64,000 nucleotides of DNA from Amoebophrya sp. A120 (taxonomy: Eukaryota > Protista > Dinoflagellata): the NCBI GenBank assembly GCA_905178155.1, contig CAJINV010000001.1:8817642-8881641 (forward strand). The letters are read 5' to 3'. The notes under the pieces were generated by a model. That model was given only the letters and a program-made list of their open reading frames with translations, was not told the origin of the DNA and searched no databases. Each line of letters opens with the position of its first letter. The first letter of the stretch is position 1. Positions 1,772-59,252 of this stretch are shown in pieces. Position numbers and translations under genes: made by a program.

Positions 1772-4700
1772 ATGAAGGCATCTTGGTCCAGTATGCTGCG
1801 CGTTTCTGTGCCGTTTCTGCTTTCTTTATGCTTCGTGTTTCTGGGAGATTATGCGGGTGCGGCCACAGCGACCCCGATCGCTGAAGGAGATAGAAGTGGT
1901 GAGGATCAGATAGTGCAAATAGAAACGGCGGATGGAACTGGAACAGAACAAGAACACCATCACGAATTTTGGGACCCAGGCGGAGAACTCGTCATGCGAG
2001 ATAAGATGGAGGAGGGGGAAGGAGGAGCTAGAGCTTCGTATGGAGGTGAAGAAACAAAAAGCGCTTCAACTTCTACACCCGCAAGTGGAAATGAGCGACC
2101 TGCTGCCTCTACCGTATCGGTAACCGCGGGCCGCGAGCCTCGAAACAATGTTCATGTTGGAGGTCCTGCTTATGTGGAATATAATGACGGCACGGCTAAG
2201 CAAGTTGAAGTTCTTCGAGACGACGCCAATTCTGTTTCAACATCGAGATCAAGTTCAAGACCAGGAGTGGCCCCTCCACGACCGCGAGCAACTACATCAT
2301 CCTCGCATGAAAACAGACCCGAGCGTGAATCTGAGGAGGTCCGGGCGAAAAGGAGCAAAAGCAGGGACGACAAGAACGATGGAAAGGACAGACACCGGCC
2401 CACCGCTATGGAGCAAGCGGACCCGGCCCACTCCATGCATCACGACAAGGTACGGAACTTTCAAACTATGGTCAAGTCCCCCCGCGAGCGGGCAGGCTTT
2501 TATCTGAATCAGGCACGAAAACCCATGACTGTGGCGATCGATGAGGTGCACGATTCCTGGTTGGATTCAGTTCTCGAGGCGGAGGAGCTGCATGCCTGGC
2601 AGTACGGCGCGCCCAGTAGTTTCATGCAGCAGGTCACAGAACAAGAGGAGCAGGCAGATAGAGCAGCGACAGAGAGAAGTACTAGAGGCACAAAGAACCA
2701 CATAAGTCGAGCTGGGTTTCGCAGGCGGGGTGATGATGCAAAAGCCAGCGATAAAAATATTAAGGACGAGGAGGACCAAGAACGGGTGATCCGAATCAAG
2801 AGCTATGAATACGACTTAGATGCGTACCCGATGAGCCCCATGGTGCCTCCTTATCTCTGCATCGAGCCGAAGGCCAAGGCCCCGTGCGCAGCTCGGTTCA
2901 AGATGACAGAATTCAAAGAGCCCGATCACGGAGCGCCTCCCCCCAGGATCCTCACGCCTGACCCCGAATCCTTGGACATTGGGGGCCAGAACGTTAAATC
3001 GACGTTGAGTGTTTACACTATCACAATCGAGGCGTGGCTGCGGGATTCGGACCGCTCCAATAACGTGTTTGAAACGGTGAAGCGGCCGGCGACGAATGTC
3101 GCCGATACAGTGAAGGCAATCTCATCCAGTCTCTCCAGTATGATGCCGTCGTTTGCGACGGACCCTGACCACGACAAGATTGCGCAAGAAAACTTCAAAG
3201 TAGCTTACAAAAACCGCGGACGCTTTCTGTTGTCCATGCCCCAGTTTTTGGCTTTGGTGCAGAGGGGCCGAGTGGCAAACACGAAAGACCGGGAGTCGTG
3301 TGCCAACGCCATTCCTGCGCACCGACAGAGCTGGGAGATCCGGCGAGTGGTGGACGCGAGCGTTCGTTCGGGACACATTGCGCTGGGCTCCATGTCGGGG
3401 AGTGTGCGCGCCGACATTGCGATGGATCTGCGCTACACGCTCTTCGTGCCTGAACGGCTGCTGCAAAGCGAATTCGACACGTTCGAGCACGTTCCTTCGA
3501 CCCTGCCGGGCCTTGACTTTTTCGAGAAGGAAGATACCACTAAGGACAGTATGTACGAGGCGCTTGGGGCGCCTTGGGACTTCGGGTGCGAGAAGCACCG
3601 TGCGGCGATCCTCACGGAGCTGTACCTCGTGACGAAGGACCGCGCGCAGTGCCGTCTGAAGAAGCTCCCGACGGCCGCGGACGCGCCCTCAGATTCGAAG
3701 GGGCCCGCAGGTAAAGAACCGGAGGCGGAACCAGAACCAAAGTCGTCTTCTGGTAGTCAAACGACAGCTGCGTCGTCGTCGACGTCGTCGTCGTCTTCTC
3801 TGGAAATCAGGCACGAAGTTGCCTTAGGAAAAGAAGAACATCACACAGAAAAAACAGAAACGGGCCTCCAGCGGTCAACTGGTGAAGTTGTGCTGGAAAG
3901 AAGAACGTCGGAGAAGGCGGAGGTGGACGGCGCGCAGGTGTTCGTGGTGGACAAAGATTTTCTCTCGCCGTTTGATGCTGATGCGACTTGCGGAGACCAT
4001 ACTTACTTTGTCATTGCCACGGCGGAGACCGCTATTACATGGCAGCAAGAGCAGGGCAAGTACACCAGCTCGCTTAAGAAGATGGTGCGGGGTGAGATGG
4101 AAGAAGGCGACAACGAGGAAATAGTGAAAAAGTACGCCGACCAGACGCTGGATCTCGAATTTCGATCGCTGTTTGCGGAACGCGAAGATGCCCTGTATTA
4201 ATACTGCTTATGGGTTGTATTTTTATCGCTTTATATGGAAAGCTCAAGCTGTAGCTAATGATGTATTGGTATTCACGACACGGTTTTAGAAAATAGAAAA
4301 GAAAGCCAGAACCGAGAAAAATATTTCCTCAACACAGCGGCAAGGAGGCTTTGGATTCTTACAAGGAGGCCCTCGCCGAGACCACGCAAGTAGGAAAATG
4401 GTTCGAGACAAATCACGACAAGCTGGATGATCTCCCCAGCGTGGGTCTAGATTTTCCCGATCCCGTGCGGTTGCACCATGCTTTACGCGGGCAGGCGGGG
4501 TACACCGTGCTCTTGATGCCGTTCCCCTCCAAGCAGATCGTGAAAGAGCAGATTTCGTCGGCGCTCGACGGGGAAACCTACCTCTACCCCGACAAGGGTT
4601 CGCACCCCATCGCGGTCGTGCCTTTCCTCGGGGACGAGTTTATCATCCCGATCGCCGATGTGCCAGAAATGCTGATCCGGGGACTGGGAGAGGGCACCGG

Positions 4701-47148: not shown

Positions 47149-50100
47149 ATGACCTCCAAGCGCAGCATCTGTAGTTCCTCCGATATGGTGCCTGCTCGTA
47201 GCGGAAATCCTGCATCTCACGAAGACGATGAACCGAAGCAGACCATCGGCACAAGCCCGACATCCTCTATTGGTAGTGAACCTCCGCCCTTGTCGTTTGG
47301 TGCGGTGCCGGAGGCGCTCTTCGGGGATCTCTACGGGATGCAGTTGGAGAACGCGAAGGACGTCCGGAGCACGCTGCGCGACATTTTCGTTTTTCGTGAC
47401 AACCTGATCAATTTCAAGAAGCTGTGCCAACGAAATCTTCGCAAAATCGTCGCTCTCCTTGACAAAACCCGCGCCCCGCACCAGTTCTTCCATTACGGCA
47501 TGCGTGTCCTTGCGGTCTCCCCTGACAAGCGCGGCCTGGAAACGATCATCGGGGAATACAAGCTCGTCGCGGAGAACAACAGCACCTGTGTCAGAGGACA
47601 TAACGTCGAGGAGGAAACTTCTCGGAAACGGAATAAAGACGTGGGCGCCATAGAAGTCTCTTCTGGCCCCGCGCCTTGCAATTATGAGTCCGTCCTCTGG
47701 GAAACGGAAGAGGTGGATGGCAAAACTGCACACAACGCTTGTTCTGCCCAAATTCAAGATTCTGTTTGGTCTTCCGACAACGTCACCCTCACTCAACCAT
47801 GCCCGTGGATACGCGAGCCGTGCCACCTAGCAAGTCTCGCCGATGGACGGGACGGCGAGTCGAATGAGCGCGACGAGAGCGAGAAGCTGTCAACTGTGCC
47901 TCGTAACGAAAGAGCCTCTTGCAGCACTGAAAATACAAACACGATTCCCACATTCCGTGACCAGAAGGATCACTATTGGACGGAGAGCAGCCGTTATGCG
48001 GAGATCACGCGTGTCAGGAATCGCTTGCAGGGCTTCCGTGACGTGCTGATGCATTTTCGCAACTTGACAAAGGCGCTTTGCTTGATTTCACGCGCCCCGC
48101 CAGAAAGAAATGCTGCCGGTGTTCAAGGTGCTGCAAGTTCTGTTCTGGAGCCAGCGCAAAGATCTTCCTCGTCTCAAACGAGAAAACGAGTGGACAACGG
48201 TACACACGCAACGACGTTGCTGCAGCCTAGCAACGCACCTCTCGCGGCAGGGGCCGCTTGGTGGAGGATGCAAGAAAAACGAGCAGAATATTCGCCTCCA
48301 GGTGAGCAACTGCAGCCCGACGGTCCGAAAAGAGACGAAGCGCCGCTTTGCGTGCTGCACTTCAAAGATGCTGCGGAAAAACCGAACGGGGATGGCACCA
48401 CTGCGCATGTAGAAGAGAGGGCCGAAGTAAACAAGACGAGGAACCGCCTCGCGGCGTGCGCTTTCATAGCAGATCAGAGTTTCTTCGACAAAGGTGATGC
48501 AGTCACGACGAAGCAAGTGCAAGGCCAGCCGCAAAACAGGAGCAACGAACAAGTAAATTGCCTTCAACTTCAGGGCGCTGTGCGTTTCTTCCTCGTGCAG
48601 TCCGGATCCTACAAGTACTGGCGCGCACGGGAAGGCTTACGGGCTGCGTACGCTGATCTCAAAACAGCGAGTGAGCAGCTGGACAAAAAAATCAAGCAGT
48701 TGCGAGAGGAGTTGGAGGAAGTAGTGCGGGGGAAAAATGGTTGCATGCTGTCCATTCTGGAATATGACCGTGCAGATTCGGGTTCGGGGTCATCTCGACG
48801 TCGCCACAAAAGTAACAAGTCACATGGGCTTTACCGTCTAAAGGCCGATCCCGGGGGAGACCTCATATTTTTGCCTCGAGGGGAGGGCTTTGCTGCCTGC
48901 TCATTGGAAGAGTTCCGCCAAAAGACGTCAGCCTACCATCGTACGACAAAGAAATTGGAAAAACTGGAGGGGACACGCGATGCGCTCTCTCTGCTGCTGG
49001 ATAGTGCGGAGGCTGTGTTGTATCAAAAAGGGCGCATTGTGTCTGCCAGCGATGCGTCTGGATCATCGTCGTTCTTGAAAAAGGGCGCAGGCGCTTCAGC
49101 ATCTTCCGGCATTGGGGGCGTTGCTGATATGAAGATGGGGTTCGGGAGCGATCATGAGTTGTCAGGTGGCAACGAGCTTGGAATTCCGTCCATTTACACC
49201 AGCATATTGGCACCCATGGAAACTGAGATAGAGACACAGACGGCGGTTATGCTAGCCGTTCTCAAAGACGCTGTCGATGTATCTGCTTCTCCAGCGAGCG
49301 ATGCCTCGACAGGCGCAGCCTTCCTCTCGGAAAGATTCGAGAGACACACAAACGAACCGCTGGTGCACTGCGCTGTCTGTAAGGCGCAGCTTCCGCAGTC
49401 CCTGATGCTTTGCAACAATGGAAATGGCGGTGACGCGAGGACTGCGTCTGAGGGCAATCCCAATGGTAATGACGATAAAGTCGCCAAACGCTCGGCTCCT
49501 AACTGCTGCCTTTTGTGTGCGGACCGGATTCGGCACGACAGAAAGATATGCCCGCAGCGTTTCCTCGCTGAAAGTAGACGTCATAATGTCGAAGCAGGCC
49601 AGCATGAGAAGAGCGCCAGAAGTACTGGCGCTGCGCTGAAGTCACATATTTTCTGTCCTCACCAGCATCGATGCTTGGCTTGCGACAATACGGCTTTTGT
49701 TCGTTGTGGCGAGTGCGGACTGGCACGGGGCGGTGCGGATGAAGTTCAAGATTTGGTAACGAAATTAGTACAAGGCGAACAAAGTGCTGCAGCCCAAGGA
49801 AATAAAAGCTTTGCCCATCTCTTTCTCGACTTTGATTTGACGCTTTGCTCTACCAAGGGAGGGGCAAACCCGCTGAAGGGTGCGCATGAGCTCGATTCAG
49901 AGCTTGTGGACGTCATCAAATACCTGCTGTCCGGCGAAAGAAAACATGAATGTGCTGAAATGCCACAATGCACACACGACGACGACCACGTAGAAGATGA
50001 TTCTGCCGCCGGCTTCCCTGAAGAGCAAAACAAGCGCGACCTGACCACCGGGCGAGTGACCATTCTGACCAAAAATCCGCACCGCGAAGAGATCCGGTCT

Positions 50101-50289
50101 TTCGTTCAACGTGAGACTGGTCTCAGTGTGCGCGTAGTCACCGTTCCCGGCCGAAGCAGCAAGCGCGAGTGGGTCGCGGAGAAGCTGCAGCAAGGCAGCG
50201 TGGTGTTTGTCGACGACGACATAAATGAACACGCAGCAATCGGAAATTTGCCTAACCTCTGGAGAATTCACTTCACAAGGGATGAGTAG
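47149..50289 (+). CDS. 1046-aa intronless protein with a Cys/His-rich (zinc-finger-like) region and a C-terminal HAD-like hydrolase domain
   Basis: HAD motif I FLDFDLTL, motif II TILTKN, motif III K and motif IV VFVDDD; CxxC pairs (CAVC, CLLC, CPH, CLAC, CGEC) just upstream. Confidence 0.7.
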   Translation: MTSKRSICSSSDMVPARSGNPASHEDDEPKQTIGTSPTSSIGSEPPPLSFGAVPEALFGDLYGMQLENAKDVRSTLRDIFVFRDNLINFKKLCQRNLRKIVALLDKTRAPHQFFHYGMRVLAVSPDKRGLETIIGEYKLVAENNSTCVRGHNVEEETSRKRNKDVGAIEVSSGPAPCNYESVLWETEEVDGKTAHNACSAQIQDSVWSSDNVTLTQPCPWIREPCHLASLADGRDGESNERDESEKLSTVPRNERASCSTENTNTIPTFRDQKDHYWTESSRYAEITRVRNRLQGFRDVLMHFRNLTKALCLISRAPPERNAAGVQGAASSVLEPAQRSSSSQTRKRVDNGTHATTLLQPSNAPLAAGAAWWRMQEKRAEYSPPGEQLQPDGPKRDEAPLCVLHFKDAAEKPNGDGTTAHVEERAEVNKTRNRLAACAFIADQSFFDKGDAVTTKQVQGQPQNRSNEQVNCLQLQGAVRFFLVQSGSYKYWRAREGLRAAYADLKTASEQLDKKIKQLREELEEVVRGKNGCMLSILEYDRADSGSGSSRRRHKSNKSHGLYRLKADPGGDLIFLPRGEGFAACSLEEFRQKTSAYHRTTKKLEKLEGTRDALSLLLDSAEAVLYQKGRIVSASDASGSSSFLKKGAGASASSGIGGVADMKMGFGSDHELSGGNELGIPSIYTSILAPMETEIETQTAVMLAVLKDAVDVSASPASDASTGAAFLSERFERHTNEPLVHCAVCKAQLPQSLMLCNNGNGGDARTASEGNPNGNDDKVAKRSAPNCCLLCADRIRHDRKICPQRFLAESRRHNVEAGQHEKSARSTGAALKSHIFCPHQHRCLACDNTAFVRCGECGLARGGADEVQDLVTKLVQGEQSAAAQGNKSFAHLFLDFDLTLCSTKGGANPLKGAHELDSELVDVIKYLLSGERKHECAEMPQCTHDDDHVEDDSAAGFPEEQNKRDLTTGRVTILTKNPHREEIRSFVQRETGLSVRVVTVPGRSSKREWVAEKLQQGSVVFVDDDINEHAAIGNLPNLWRIHFTRDE

Positions 50290-53677: not shown

Positions 53678-54293
53678 ATGAACAGGAAGGTGTTATTGAA
53701 GTAAGCACCAATTATACCATCTTTTCGGGTTTATGGCTTCCTACCGTGGTCTGATTACAACAACAACTGCACTAACGCTCGCAGTGTGATTAACTTTCTG
53801 AAATTTGTGAGCTTCGGTTTGCGAGTGTGCCGCGTTTAAGAACAGCAGACGTATTTTATTTGGAGTAGGCGTGGGCCTGCGGGCCTAAATTCCGGTGGGT
53901 TGGTCGGTTGGTTGGTTGGTTTTGGACAGACGACATTTGACCGAATTTACGAAGTATGGAGACAAATCCCTGCTCGCTCTTGGCGAAGAGCGGAAAACCA
54001 TGCACCTGTCGCGGAGACAATAATCTCCTCGAAAAGATTATTGTCTCCCCAACAGGTAGATGGTTTTCCGTGGAGATTATTGTCTCTCTCGCCGATACGT
54101 AGAGGTTGGAAATTGAAAATCGGAGCCCTGCCCTCGGGGGTGGGGCGGCTCCACGGTTTTGAATTTAGAAGACAGCCGCAACGGCAAGGAGGGCGAAACA
54201 TGATAAGGGGGTGGTCGGGGCGCGCGGCGCACCTGCCTCCCTACCGGGGCTGCAGCCCGCCCCTGCGAGGCAGAGTTCGATGTGTCCACGCAA

Positions 54294-54565
54294 CACAGAC
54301 ACAAATCTGTGTTGCGCGGGCGCCAATCTGTGTTGCGCGCACCACAAATCCGTGCTGCGCGCAGCTCGCCGCAGACACAAATCTCCGCTGCGCGCAGCGC
54401 AAATCTGTGTCGCGCGCAAATCTGTGCTGCGTGTTGCGCGCAAATCTGTGCTGCGCGCAGCTCGCCGGAGACAAATCTGTGCTGCGCGGACGCAAATCTG
54501 TGTTGCGCGCAGCACAAATCAGTGTTGCGCGCAGCTCGCCGCAGACACAGATCTGTGTTGCGTGG
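54294..54565. repeat. Minisatellite of ~18-22-bp CAAATCTGTG(T/C)TGCGCG units
   Basis: About a dozen degenerate copies, some extended by GCAGCTCGCCGCAGACA. Confidence 0.85.
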
Positions 54566-54889
54566 ACGCGATCGGAGCTCCGGGGGGCCTCGTGAGAATT
54601 TGCGCGAGATAGAAAGAGGTCGGGGCTCCAGTGCTGCATTTTTCTCCAGCCGCGACCTGCGTTTCCTGCCTCAACCCAAGCAAAGCACATTTGGGAAATA
54701 GAGACATATTCGCGCAAAATTTGGATCAGCCCCCGCTTGGTCATGCCGAGCGGGGGCTTTTTGCGCAACGCAACCCCTTGGCTGCGCGAGTCCCTTGCTT
54801 GCAAGCCCCCTGCTAATAAATTGAGCCCCTGGGGAGGTCGGCAGGCGTGGCCACCGGGTGGCGCGCGCGCGCCGACCCCTGCCAAGGCA

Positions 54890-55830
54890 GGTGGGTGGGT
54901 AGGGTCGGCAGGCGTGGCCAATAGGCAACGCACGCTCGCCCCACCCCCTCCCGCCCCCGCTGGCTTGGCAGGTGGGTTGGTAGGTCGGTAGGCGTGGCCA
55001 ATAGCCAACACACGCTCGCCCCCCCCCCCATTTGGCAGGTGGGTGGGTAGGTCGGACGCACGCTCGCCCCGGCCCCCCCCCACCAGGCAGGTGGGTGGGT
55101 AGGTCGGTAGGCGTGGCCAATAGGCAGCGCACGCTCGCCCCACCCCCCCACCTGCCTGGTGGGTGGGTTGGTAGGTCGCTCGGCAGGCGTGGCCAATAGG
55201 CAGCGCACGCTCGCCCCACCCACCCACCAGGCAGGTGGAGGGTGGGTAGGTCGGTAGGCGTGGCCAAGAGGCAACGCACGCTCACCCCACCCACCCACCA
55301 GCGAGGTGGGTGGGTAGGTCGGTAGGCGTTGTCAATAGGCAGCGCACGCTCGCCCCACCCGCCCACCAGGCTGGTGGGTGGGTAGGTCGGTAGGCGTAGC
55401 CAAGGGGCAGCGCACGCTCGCCCCACCCACCCACCAGCGAGGTGGGTGGGTAGGTCGGTGGGCGTGGCCAATAGGCAGCGCACGCTCGCCGCACCCACCC
55501 ACCAGGCTGGTGGGTGGGTAGGTCGGTAGGCGTGGCCAATAGGCAGCGCACGCTCCCTCGCCCCACCCACCCACCAGGCAGGTGGGTGGGTAGGTCGGTA
55601 GGCGTGGCCAAGGGGCAGCGCACGCTCGCCACACTCACCCACCCACCAGCGAGGTGGGTGGGTAGGTCGGTAGGTGTGGCCAATAGGCAGCGCTCGCTCG
55701 CTCGCCCCACCCACCCACCAGGCTGGCGGGTGGGTAGGTCGGTTGGCGTGGCCAATAGGCAGCGCGCGCTCCCTCGCCCCACCCACCCACCAGGCTGGTG
55801 GGTGGGTAGGTCGGTAGGCGTGACCAGTAG
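54890..55830. repeat. Tandem array of ~68-bp units (about 14 copies)
   Basis: Unit GGTGGGTGGGTAGGTCGGTAGGCGTGGCCAATAGGCAGCGCACGCTCGCCCCACCCACCCACCAGGC(T/A); starts at 55305, 55373, 55441 and 55509 give a 68-bp period. Confidence 0.92.
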
Positions 55831-55997
55831 GCAGCTGTCTCTGGGTGGAAAGGGATAGGTAGGTAGGTGGGTCGGTGCGATCACGGTACTACAATGAATC
55901 GCAAAGGCGCCAGGTAGGTGGGTAGGTAGGCAGCTTCAACAGTAATAGTAGACGAATCTCAGAAAAACACAAAACACAATGCAGCGGGGTCGGTCAA

Positions 55998-57840
55998 ATG
56001 TCGTCTGTCCAAAACCAACCAACCAACCGACCAACCCACCGGAATTTAGGCCCGCAGGCCCACGCCTATTGCAACTCCGATGTTGAAGATGCTCTCGCCT
56101 CGCAGATTGCGTCGTCAGCCGCCGCAGCTGCCTGTGTTGGCTGCACCGGGAAGCAGCCCCGTCGCGGTTGGACGGAGGCGGACCTCATCTCGCAGCCGGT
56201 GGGGGTCTATGCCTTTAAATGCACACCACCGCATCGTGTCCGGTACCACGCTCTGTTTCCAGTTTCGCGAACTGACCAACGCTTCGCAGGCTGCTTTGCG
56301 ACGGCGCAAGAGGCGGCTCAGGCTTGGGACGCAGCAGCTAGAGCCGGCGGTTGGAGAGTCGTAAATGCTCCCAGGGACGTCGTGAGGGAGTTGGCATTCC
56401 CTGACTACCTCCGGGGGAAAATTGCAGCTGCTAAACAGCCGGCCGCAACTTTTCCGCATCCGCCGTCGGAGGTTAGGTGGCGCACGAACGAGCTTAAAGA
56501 AGTACTACGTGACGTGGCAGAACGGCCCGTGTCCAAGATATGGAACGGTCCTCGTGGTCTGCAGCAGGATGACCATGACACAGCCGCGGGAAACGAGCTT
56601 TGCTGGTCCTTTCACCCGCATGCGGCCGAGGTGCGAAAAACGACCGCACGCGGAACGACGCTGCAGGGAACACGCCCATCGGCTCTGGACACCTGGCATG
56701 ACCTCGCGTTGCGAGCCAAATGCGTCCGGTCCTGCATCGAATATCGGGGAGACCAAGAGGTTGGATGAAATCACTTTCTGACACACAGCACGCTCTGCAC
56801 AGCTATAGTCCTCGACAATCACGTTTCTGCATATTGTTATTGACGTCGTGAACAATTAGTATTGCGAGAGTCCATGCAATCCGTCGCTGTACTAGTTGCG
56901 CGCAGCAACAATGTTTTCCTCAAAATTACGTTGGACAGGTATCGCGTATGACGCTTGCAGGAGAGCTTCGGTTTATGCAAGGAAGCTGGGTCTTGAATTT
57001 CCAGCCGCGTGTTGCCGCGGCGATTTATGAGCGGTTTGCAGGTACCCACTAACGAGTTGTTACCCACTAACGAGTTGTTACCCACTAACGAGTTGTTTCA
57101 ATTTCAATCAAAGTATGCACGATGACGGTTCTCGTGGTCTTGTTCCGCAATAAATGGGTCCGTCAGTGACCCCCTCCGGGCTCCAAGCGTCTCGAAGATT
57201 TACCATCCTTCGACAAACGTGCACAGGTAACGCTGCGGTCGTCTACGACAGTTCTGCCGGATGGGGTGGTCGCCTTCTCGGCGCTTTTCTTGCCAGCAAT
57301 GTCAGCAAATACATCGCTTGTGAACCGAGTTCCAACACATTCGCAGGGCTAGAGCAGCTACGAGACCTCGTACTGGAAAAACTTGTAGATGACAAAAAAG
57401 GGGGCTTTGTTGTCTCAACCGAAAATGGCAGGCGGATGTGTTCACTCGACATCGAGCTCCACAAGTGCGGAAGCGAGGACTTCGTGCCGCCGAAAAACTC
57501 CGTCGACCTCGCTTTCACTTCCCCGCCCTACTTCTCTCTCGAACGCTACGCTACAGAACCTTCACAGTCACACGTTCGTTTTCCAACCTTCCCGCAATGG
57601 TGCGCAGGGTTTTTGCAACCAACCCTTACGCACACCTTCGAGGCTCTCAAGCCCGGTGGCGCGATGCTCATCAACATCGCGAATTGCAAAATCTTTACGG
57701 ACCGCGGGATCGATCTCGAGGCGGAAACAGTGCGTATAGCGGTTAAGGTGGTTGGTGCGCGACAAGAGACCACACTCCGTCTGCTGAAGATGGACGGCAC
57801 GGAGGACAATGGGGAGCCAATTTTCGTTTTCAGAAAATAA
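55998..57840 (+). CDS. AP2-like DNA-binding domain fused to an amino-type (SPPY; N4-C/N6-A) DNA methyltransferase, 3 exons (about 492 aa from the ATG at 55998; true start uncertain)
   Basis: Exons 55998-56759, 56939-57041 and 57227-57840 are joined in frame by GT-AG introns. AP2-like GVY...RYHALF...RFAGCFATAQEAAQAWDAAARAGGWRVVNAP. MTase motifs NFQPRVAAAIYERF, VYDSSAGWGGRLLG, YIACEP, DLAFTSPPYFSLERY and LKPGGAMLINIAN. Confidence 0.82.
57043..57096. repeat. 3 x 18-bp tandem repeat at the start of the second methyltransferase intron
   Basis: TACCCACTAACGAGTTGT repeated three times. Confidence 0.9.
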
Positions 57841-58280
57841 GATTATCACAGAATTACACTATTTCCTGGTGGCTTTAAAGCCAACCCTCAAATCCCCAAA
57901 ACAAGGCGATCATACAATTCCTCTAGAAAAAACAACGACACCGATTCTCCATTGCTCAGTTATAGAATTGATTGATATTGCAGCCGTCTCTGCGCACTAC
58001 AGTAGTTTACGATGACGGTGAGGTGCACGCTACACGAAGTTCATAGAAAGCTTCTTTGACTCATTTTCTTTGTGTTCAAAGCCTAGTATGTCTAAAACCA
58101 AACATACGGTCAAAACGGAGCCGGCGGGGCCGTCGCACCCCTTCTCCTTCAGCCCACACGAAAGAAGAGTTTTAGAGACGATTCTTCGTACCACGGTATG
58201 CTAACATCAAGCTGAACAAGTGAAGTACTTCCTACTTTTCTTTACAAAAACGTGATCCCGAAAAGCAAATCACAATCAAA

Positions 58281-59252
58281 ATGGCATCCACGGCAGTGAA
58301 CCCGCGGTCTTTTTCACGATGGTTCGCGCACCAACCGTTGCTTCTCACACTGGTTGTTCTTCTGCTTTCTGGCGTCGACCTCGCGTTTTCCAAAGCTCCG
58401 GAGCAGATCGACCCCAACATTTACGCCCGGCTTTTCCAGAACAACCGCCCCACGTTTGACCACATTGCTTCGAAGGTCCTCGCCGACCTCCCAGAAAGCC
58501 GCAACGGAGTAGCTACCGTGCTGGATTTGGCGTCGGGCCCCGGGGAACCGAGCGTGACCCTGGCGGTGATGGACAAGGACGCACCAAAGCTCGCGAAAAT
58601 CACCACCACTGATTTCCAGTCGATGATGGTCGAAAAGGCCAAGTGGCGCGCGGAGATCGAACACGTCGAGGACAAATTGGCCTTCGCGACCACCTCGGCC
58701 GACGACCTCTCGCAGTTTGCCGACGGCAGTTTCGACGCGGTCACTATGAGCTTCGGTCTGATGTTCGTGCCCGACCGGCAGAAAAGCTTGCAGGAGATCG
58801 CACGGGTGCTGCGCCCCGGCGGTCGGGCGTATTTGTCGGTGTGGAAGGAACTGCCGTTTCAGACCTTCGCCCGCTACGTCTTAGAGCAAATCGCCGGAGA
58901 GGAAAAGAAAGCCACGTTGCCGCCGTTTGCCATCAATCCGCTGGCTCTGCAAGCCGAGAACGCCGTGGAATCGCTGGCGGAGAACGCAAATCTAGTCGTG
59001 AAGGGCGACGAACGGCTCTCCTACGACTTCCACATGGGAACCTACAAGGAAACGGCCGACGGGCTTCGGATCCTGGCGGGCACACTGCTGAAAGAAATCG
59101 AGGAGGAACAACCCGGCGCCCAGGCACGGTTCGACTCACTCGTGCAAGCGGAGATGGAAGCCCGGGGGTGGACGGGCGGCGCGATTCCCGATAATTCCCC
59201 ACAGATCTTGACGCTGCAGAAGCCGGCGCAGGGGGAGGCGTCCGACTTGTAA
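58281..59252 (+). CDS. Class I SAM-dependent methyltransferase (UbiE/COQ5-like fold) with an N-terminal signal peptide
   Basis: VLDLASGPGEP, TDFQSMMV, FADGSFDAVTMSFGLMFVPD and EIARVLRPGGR; hydrophobic leader LLLTLVVLLLSGVDLAFS. Confidence 0.85.
   Translation: MASTAVNPRSFSRWFAHQPLLLTLVVLLLSGVDLAFSKAPEQIDPNIYARLFQNNRPTFDHIASKVLADLPESRNGVATVLDLASGPGEPSVTLAVMDKDAPKLAKITTTDFQSMMVEKAKWRAEIEHVEDKLAFATTSADDLSQFADGSFDAVTMSFGLMFVPDRQKSLQEIARVLRPGGRAYLSVWKELPFQTFARYVLEQIAGEEKKATLPPFAINPLALQAENAVESLAENANLVVKGDERLSYDFHMGTYKETADGLRILAGTLLKEIEEEQPGAQARFDSLVQAEMEARGWTGGAIPDNSPQILTLQKPAQGEASDL

Follow-up and report, generated by a model that had tools for sequence, protein, structure and literature searches.

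Introduction

To our knowledge, eukaryotic enzymes that write N4-methylcytosine (4mC) or N6-methyladenine (6mA) are few and contested, and each well-supported case combines a prokaryote-derived methylase with a chromatin-targeting domain. Here we analyze a window of 64,000 nucleotides from the dinoflagellate Amoebophrya sp. A120 (contig CAJINV010000001.1 of assembly GCA_905178155.1) and focus on one spliced gene on its plus strand (positions 55,998 to 57,840; coordinates are those of the window unless stated otherwise). The gene probably encodes a single compact protein in which an AP2 fold is joined to a phage-derived amino-methyltransferase dependent on S-adenosylmethionine (SAM), a writer of N4-methylated cytosine or, alternatively, N6-methylated adenine in DNA. 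A described system that is alike in concept is N4CMT of bdelloid rotifers, for which 4mC activity was demonstrated by experiment (Rodriguez et al. 2022, PMC8885841). At the level of concept, N4CMT is likewise a horizontally acquired, prokaryote-type SPPY amino-methyltransferase that was domesticated in a eukaryote and gained a domain for targeting chromatin or DNA. The rotifer domain is a chromodomain, whereas the targeting candidate in Amoebophrya is an AP2 fold that directly adjoins an enzyme of phage type, a combination conserved in several lineages of plankton.

Among the eukaryotic clades of group 1 defined by Iyer, Zhang & Aravind 2016 (PMC4738411), clades 5 and 6 are unpermuted, and clade 5 has a Ser in its strand-4 motif. 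Clade 6 was derived from methylases of phage ParB-Tls loci, is expanded in haptophytes, and carries an N-terminal domain that was called FHA-fold (PMC4738411). A member from Prymnesium polylepis and phage relatives bearing ParB_N also occur on the side of the Amoebophrya family, and clade 6, which we compared by description only, might be this same family with its N-terminal domain read differently. A literature search turned up no description of a protein that fuses AP2 to a methyltransferase, be it from dinoflagellates or from other eukaryotes. Neither AP2 nor methylation is a subject of the paper on the A120 genome (PMC7789003), and the identifier of the gene is absent from the supplements of PMC6176090 and PMC7789003. 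The gene model is already public and unnamed; what appears to be new is its functional reading, together with the recognition that the fusion defines a family conserved among protists.

Gene Structure and Expression

The program-made list of open reading frames (ORFs) contains two frames on the plus strand of this region, 55998-56768 and 57154-57840. An earlier note, made from the letters of the window, had proposed that a hidden 103-bp exon links them through two GT-AG introns into one eukaryotic protein of about 492 residues, and transcripts and public annotation agree with this proposal. Public sequencing runs were compared with positions 55900-58300, yielding transcript contigs X1 (1527 nt) and X2 (2403 nt), which stem from different samples of a single study. 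Both contigs skip exactly the two proposed introns (Table 1), with joints at 56757/56937 (179 nt skipped) and 57038/57224 (185 nt skipped), each flanked by GT..AG. Exon 1 is collinear with X1 over 56065-56757, and the middle exon has the sequence VSRMTLAGELRFMQGSWVLNFQPRVAAAIYERFA. Intron sequence was covered by short contigs only, at 5- to 6-fold lower depth, as unspliced precursor would be.

The exons were searched separately. When exon 1 was used as query in an exhaustive HMMER search, it returned P0121 (CAD7926005.1 / GSA120T00005781001), a 492-aa 'unnamed protein product [Amoebophrya sp. A120]' whose residues 1-254 are identical to exon 1 and whose sequence across both junctions is exactly that of the three-exon model. 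Analyses of the full-length protein were done on P0121. An intronless homologue of 588 aa (L011) aligns with its residues 1-492 at 39% identity (E 7e-90), and the three Amoebophrya exons are therefore collinear with an uninterrupted homologue.

Exon 3 occurs once in the genome (115.5 Mb, 401 contigs), so that the joined form is cDNA, and an origin from a retrocopy was ruled out. An origin of the introns from introner copies was likewise discarded, given that each intron sequence is unique in the genome, and bacterial contamination was excluded by the introns, the 16.5-Mb scaffold that holds the gene and the spliced transcripts. The gene thus belongs to the nuclear genome of Amoebophrya sp. A120, where it is expressed and present in a single copy. 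Spliceosomal introns, a host chromosome, expression and conservation, the marks of a domesticated gene, were all found, and together with the eukaryote-type clade described below they bear out the proposal that an acquired methyltransferase was domesticated and gained introns. As a side observation, intron 2 contains an 18-nt unit, acccactaacgagttgtt, repeated three times in tandem at 57044-57097, directly 3' of the GT donor.

The Methyltransferase Module

The motifs that the earlier note had located in the C-terminal part of the protein, the SAM-binding segment DSSAGWGGRL and the catalytic SPPY, lie where they were proposed (Table 1) and are embedded in a strongly conserved enzyme. In 58 aligned sequences, residues D296, G300, G302, G303 and R304 of motif I and T386, S387, P388, P389 and Y390 of motif IV are invariant. 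In motif X (alignment A3), A280 is invariant, and N274, F275, P277 and Y284 come close to this. With all invariant SAM-binding and catalytic residues intact, the enzyme is most likely active. The full-length model predicts a class-I SAM methyltransferase with a Rossmann fold for residues ~130-492. The motif IV segment matches the start of Pfam family PF01555 and also matches structure 2zie. No NCBIfam match was found for P0121, and one bacterial homologue, P0009, gave sub-threshold matches only. The motifs follow one another in the unpermuted order X, I, IV; the permuted order of the beta class, with IV before I, was not found here. In the structure 2zie, by comparison, motif IV comes first and the segment resembling motif I is C-terminal to it.

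With exon 3 as query we recovered 693 homologues, mostly metagenome proteins of 330-355 aa, many of which carry PF01555 in precomputed annotation, along with a protein of the dinoflagellate Effrenium voratum. The homology of these sequences reaches well into exon 1. Consequently, the earlier assignment of exon 1 to the AP2 part stands for residues ~44-125, and from about residue 130 onward the exon already belongs to a methyltransferase module common to the phage enzymes.

Phage relatives appeared in sequence and structure comparisons alike, in agreement with the proposal of a phage-type SPPY amino-methyltransferase. Structural alignment in the ESM Atlas superimposed residues 130-492 on phage methylases of 344 aa (template modelling score 0.86), and the same resource shows phage relatives fused to ParB_N or to LAGLIDADG plus HTH. 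Orphan phage methyltransferases of 330-360 aa are collinear with residues ~130-492 at 28-45% identity and share the motif order X-I-IV and the invariant DxxxGWGGR and FTSPPY; they differ in lacking the AP2-like domain and introns and in being sited in phage replication modules. Examples are NVP2058O_092, a Staphylococcus Twortvirinae 'DNA methyltransferase', and ESM Atlas clusters labelled 'cytosine-N(4)-specific'. NVP2058O_092, from Vibrio phage 2.058.O, is encoded between a helicase/recombination block and the genes for dCMP deaminase, DHFR and thymidylate synthase, and the Twortvirinae homologue lies between DnaB and SbcD. This replication and nucleotide-metabolism context, together with the fusions to DNA-binding domains, points to DNA as the substrate. 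We know of no orphan phage methyltransferase of this size that has been biochemically characterised.

In the phylogenetic tree of the methyltransferase region, 12 eukaryote-type sequences form one clade (Shimodaira-Hasegawa-like approximate likelihood ratio test, 100), which a long branch sets apart from the 46 sequences of phage/bacterial type. The clade comprises P0121, P0122, P0123, P0125, P0131, P0132, P0136, P0129 and four N-terminally truncated models; L011 was excluded. The tree was rooted at its midpoint only, and we infer the direction of transfer because the prokaryotic/viral group is far broader. Overall, sequence comparison supports tailed phages, with their orphan methylases, as the source of the methyltransferase part.

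The AP2-like Domain

The earlier note had also read the N-terminal region as an AP2/ERF domain. This reading held in homology searches, profile comparisons and predicted structure, though not in Pfam, where AP2 (PF00847) gave no match for exon 1 at E<=10. Searched with phmmer against 1.8 billion proteins, exon 1 matched multi-AP2 proteins, namely P0141 (E 1.4e-12, with five repeats), P0146 (1.8e-9) and P0154 (5e-6), which themselves score 1.4e-5 (under the cut-off), 3e-18 and 1.8e-63 against Pfam AP2. P0146 is eukaryotic, since a RING finger is also present. The exhaustive HMMER search with exon 1 yielded 44 relatives. A word-indexed homologue search with the AP2 region returned nothing, which reflects a limit of sensitivity, and the sole match of exon 1 among the PHROGs was a faint HNH-endonuclease profile (E 0.28). 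When a profile of 24 family members was compared with the PDB, five of the seven matches were AP2/ERF domains, 7wq5 (WRI1, 3e-4), 2gcc and 1gcc (AtERF1, 0.006-0.008), 5wx9 (ERF096, 0.009) and 7et4 (TEM1, 0.04), and one methylase was among the rest. Over the A120 genome, Pfam AP2 gave two matches only, both below threshold.

The AlphaFold (AF2) model of residues 38-140 (56109-56417) reached a predicted local distance difference test (pLDDT) of 90.7 and a predicted template modelling score (pTM) of 0.81, and it contains strands at 33-38, 44-51 and 57-63 and a helix at 66-79. An exhaustive structural search (VIA) placed AtERF1 (2gcc_A) first (Z 7.1, root-mean-square deviation 2.1 Å, 59/63 residues), followed by TEM1 (Z 5.9) and WRI1 (Z 5.6), with unrelated folds at 4.6 or below. 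With Foldseek, AP2 domains again came out on top, the best nine matches in the PDB all being of this kind, with probabilities up to 0.99, although the domain is so small that the E value is no better than 0.08. Profile, direct homology and predicted fold agree, supporting the prediction that residues ~44-125 adopt an AP2 fold. Note that the structural neighbours also include proteins with an AP2 fold from the mitoribosome of Toxoplasma gondii (9hqv_Yn, 9i05_XH; Z 3.6-4.6), a reminder that AP2 folds of alveolates can be RNA-associated.

The Amoebophrya domain shares with AP2/ERF domains (PF00847; AtERF1 1gcc/2gcc, TEM1 7et4, WRI1 7wq5; ApiAP2) the three-stranded sheet with its helix and the LG.F.T.EEAA.A(Y/W)D..A motif. 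It differs in an extra N-terminal strand with a CxxC, and its strands 2 and 3 contain a His and a Cys that do not vary. In alignment A1, H84 and C99 are invariant and C46 and C49 are present in at least 90% of the sequences, whereas canonical AP2 sequences have Thr or Ala at the aligned positions. These four family-specific residues form a putative site that could possibly bind zinc. The domain differs further in its most likely setting. The model of the full-length protein (pLDDT 88.4, pTM 0.86) suggests, because of this high pTM, that the AP2 fold is packed on the enzyme and not loosely tethered or free-standing. DNA binding by the fold is plausible.

A Conserved Protist Family

The fusion was sought in other organisms and found in at least eight protein clusters from other protists, which share the whole architecture at 35-50% identity; conservation of this kind implies long purifying selection. 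The same architecture occurs in P0122 (592 aa), P0123 (513), P0125 (497), P0131 (545), P0132 (575), P0136 (477), P0129 and L011. In each the order is a CxxC, the AP2-like domain, the segments FP..P.D..WR and QQ.DH.APGN.LC.S..PH, and the methyltransferase. The named sources, dinoflagellates and possibly a haptophyte, are Amoebophrya, Effrenium voratum and Prymnesium polylepis; the remaining sequences come from environmental assemblies, including Tara Oceans. The E. voratum protein is 57% identical to P0125 over the enzyme. A transcriptome fragment of P. polylepis bears the AP2-like N-terminus, with contamination of the transcriptome being possible.

The intronless homologue L011 was found by scanning the JGI metagenomes with family member P0183. 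It occupies 2872-4638 on the plus strand of Ga0210248_100042 (also L013), a metagenome contig of 88.5 kb with 60-70% GC, and is adjoined by a gene with a staphylococcal-nuclease domain (PF00565, 6e-23).

Proposed Function and Alternatives

We lean towards the view that this protein combines an AP2 fold with a phage-derived, SAM-dependent amino-methyltransferase that writes methyl marks on N4 of cytosine (alternatively N6 of adenine) in DNA, and from its sequence it is a credible candidate writer of 4mC or 6mA in eukaryotic DNA. In double-stranded DNA, the enzyme would flip a target base into its SPPY pocket, where the exocyclic amine would be methylated; the Ser of motif IV favours N4 of cytosine over the alternative, N6 of adenine. 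The DNA could be bound jointly by the helical N-terminal region, which is of phage origin, and the AP2 fold packed tightly with it, and the two could set or extend the choice of target.

Several observations weigh against this reading. Pfam AP2 has no match in P0121-P0132, six family members, at E<=1. Allen and colleagues in 1998 are said to have placed the DNA contacts of AtERF1 at Arg150/152, Trp154, Glu160, Arg162/170 and Trp172; in our alignment the corresponding positions of the AP2-like domain are mostly replaced, and mostly non-basic. Compared with PF01555, the methyltransferase scores 18.7 bits with exon 3 and 16.6 bits with P0121, below the cut-off of 26.7 bits, as the enzyme is unpermuted and the Pfam family is centred on beta-class enzymes. 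The nearest solved structures are the tRNA N2-methylguanosine (m2G) enzymes Trm11, TrmN and Trm14 (Z 16-18, with Trm11 and TrmN at 17-18), other class-I enzymes standing at Z 14-16. In addition, at the 5' end of the mRNA X1 begins at 56065 and X2 leaves the genome at 56087, and the annotated ATG at 55998 sits inside a transposon repeat.

The structures of the tRNA enzymes lend themselves to a different substrate, namely RNA, in which m2G, N4-methylcytidine (m4C) or N6-methyladenosine (m6A) would be made, for example in tRNA or rRNA, with the AP2 fold as an RNA-binding or scaffold domain. The structural resemblance of the N-terminal domain to mitoribosomal proteins of Toxoplasma fits this idea, and RNA N4-cytosine roles have been suggested for some eukaryotic Ser-motif clades fused to PPR (Iyer et al. 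2016, PMC4738411). We nevertheless consider it improbable. The margin in Z of the tRNA enzymes over generic class-I enzymes is small, so structure alone favours no substrate; the relatives in sequence are orphan methylases of phage DNA replication modules, some fused to ParB_N, LAGLIDADG or HTH; and the best matches of the AP2 fold are the DNA-binding ERF, TEM1 and WRI1. It is more conceivable, though still rather unlikely, that the same architecture methylates N6 of adenine in DNA. Enzymes with (D/N/S)PP(Y/F) include N6 and N4 types, PF01555 spans both, and the 'N-4 cytosine' labels of the phage homologues are automatic annotation. The residue that speaks for cytosine is Ser387, which is shared by 58/58 aligned sequences. 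The PROSITE signature of N4-cytosine enzymes is [LIVMF]-T-S-P-P-[FY], and F385-T-S-P-P-Y390 fits both it and the criterion of a Ser in motif IV. A Vibrio phage homologue is moreover tagged with InterPro entry IPR017985; the Ser motif and this entry favour N4 of cytosine as the target.

The ancestry of the methyltransferase in phages or viruses, and a transposon that adjoins the 5' end and provides the ATG, would also suit a transcribed relic of a viral or mobile-element insertion without host function. We regard this as very improbable, since the gene is single-copy, its two unique introns are precisely spliced, its catalytic residues are all intact, and other protists in at least eight clusters have kept the entire architecture.

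The preferred reading of a DNA-directed AP2-methyltransferase has implications beyond Amoebophrya. AP2 is the main transcription-factor fold of alveolates, and the chromatin of dinoflagellates is largely without nucleosomes. In a broader interpretation, which we offer tentatively and hold to be doubtful, the protein is a phage N4-cytosine methylase with a built-in, zinc-stabilised AP2 module for target recognition and the founding recognised member of a marine protist family. If this were true, there would be sequence-directed nuclear 4mC in dinoflagellates, and probably in haptophytes and others, and a second, independent eukaryotic 4mC system after bdelloid N4CMT. The gene provides a concrete, clonable protein for asking whether dinoflagellates carry sequence-directed 4mC or 6mA, as well as a natural example of a fusion between a DNA-binding domain and a methylase, and a public 'unnamed protein product' gains a functional annotation.

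Table 1. Coordinates of the AP2-methyltransferase gene and of its parts within the window
Feature	Position	Strand	Remarks
Right terminal inverted repeat of transposon	55990..56068		Holds the sole in-frame ATG (55998) and the first ~24 codons
Exon 1	55998..56759	+	Codons 1-254; disordered N-terminus, CxxC, AP2-like domain, start of methyltransferase N-terminal region
AP2-like domain (predicted)	56127..56372	+	Residues ~44-125; three-stranded sheet, preceded by an extra strand and a short helix and followed by a long helix
C46-x2-C49	56133..56144	+	With H84 and C99, four (nearly) invariant, family-specific residues
Exon-1 part of methyltransferase module	56385..56759	+	Residues ~130-254; homologous to phage/bacterial N-terminal region (FPxY ... 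LCWSFHPH ...)
Intron 1	56760..56938	+	179 nt, GT..AG; joint in X1 and X2 contigs; single genomic match
Exon 2	56939..57041	+	103 nt; bears motif X (NFQPRVAAAIY, 56996-57028)
Intron 2	57042..57226	+	185 nt, GT..AG; joint in X1 and X2 contigs; single genomic match
Exon 3	57227..57840	+	Rossmann catalytic core and stop codon
Motif I (SAM binding)	57247..57276	+	D296-S-S-A-G-W-G-G-R-L
Motif IV (catalytic loop)	57514..57531	+	F385-T-S-P-P-Y390; SPPY at 57520-57531
3' untranslated region	57841..58002	+	Transcript contigs end at 57955 (X1) and 58002 (X2)

The 5' End and Neighbouring Genes

The gene begins at the edge of a non-autonomous transposon of ~2.2 kb (53866-56068) with a GC-rich satellite filling and terminal inverted repeats of 79-85 nt. 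The repeat arms (53860-53944 / 55990-56074) are 98% complementary, and at least 18 copies of the element occur across the genome. Each repeat contains an outward-facing ATG encoding MSSVQNQPTNRPTHRNLGPQAHAY, and the annotated AP2-methyltransferase starts at the right-hand ATG, as also in the public gene model. Exon 1 has no other Met codon in frame, and the upstream frame that would exist without the transposon has no ATG back to its stop at 53791. The flank at 56050-56150 is unique in the genome. We infer that ATG 55998 is the start codon; that the AP2 frame itself is coding follows from its conservation across the family. Beyond 56087, contig X2 continues with 826 nt that have no place on the compared stretch, and its last 25 nt are the same as the repeat's outer end, oriented as in the left arm. 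The gene may have two 5' isoforms that differ at 56044-56087 and upstream; otherwise, part of the transposon may serve as an upstream exon or be removed as an unconventional intron.

Upstream of the transposon, an ORF of 1046 aa (47149-50289, plus strand) matched no Pfam family at E<=0.01. The next gene downstream (58281-59252, plus strand) encodes a 323-aa class-I SAM methyltransferase of UbiE/COQ5 type (PF01209, 7e-19), unrelated to the DNA methylase family. A second PF01555-like gene lies on the minus strand of the same scaffold (L009:2733-5339, equivalent to G000:C1:12767732-12770338) in an open frame of 869 aa. Its C-terminus (residues 714-822) matches the motif-I half of N6_N4_Mtase with a score over the cut-off (27.4 bits). 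Since the frame also has an FTSLPD motif around residue 135 and a middle part with a long stretch of low complexity, it may encode a permuted, beta-type relative.

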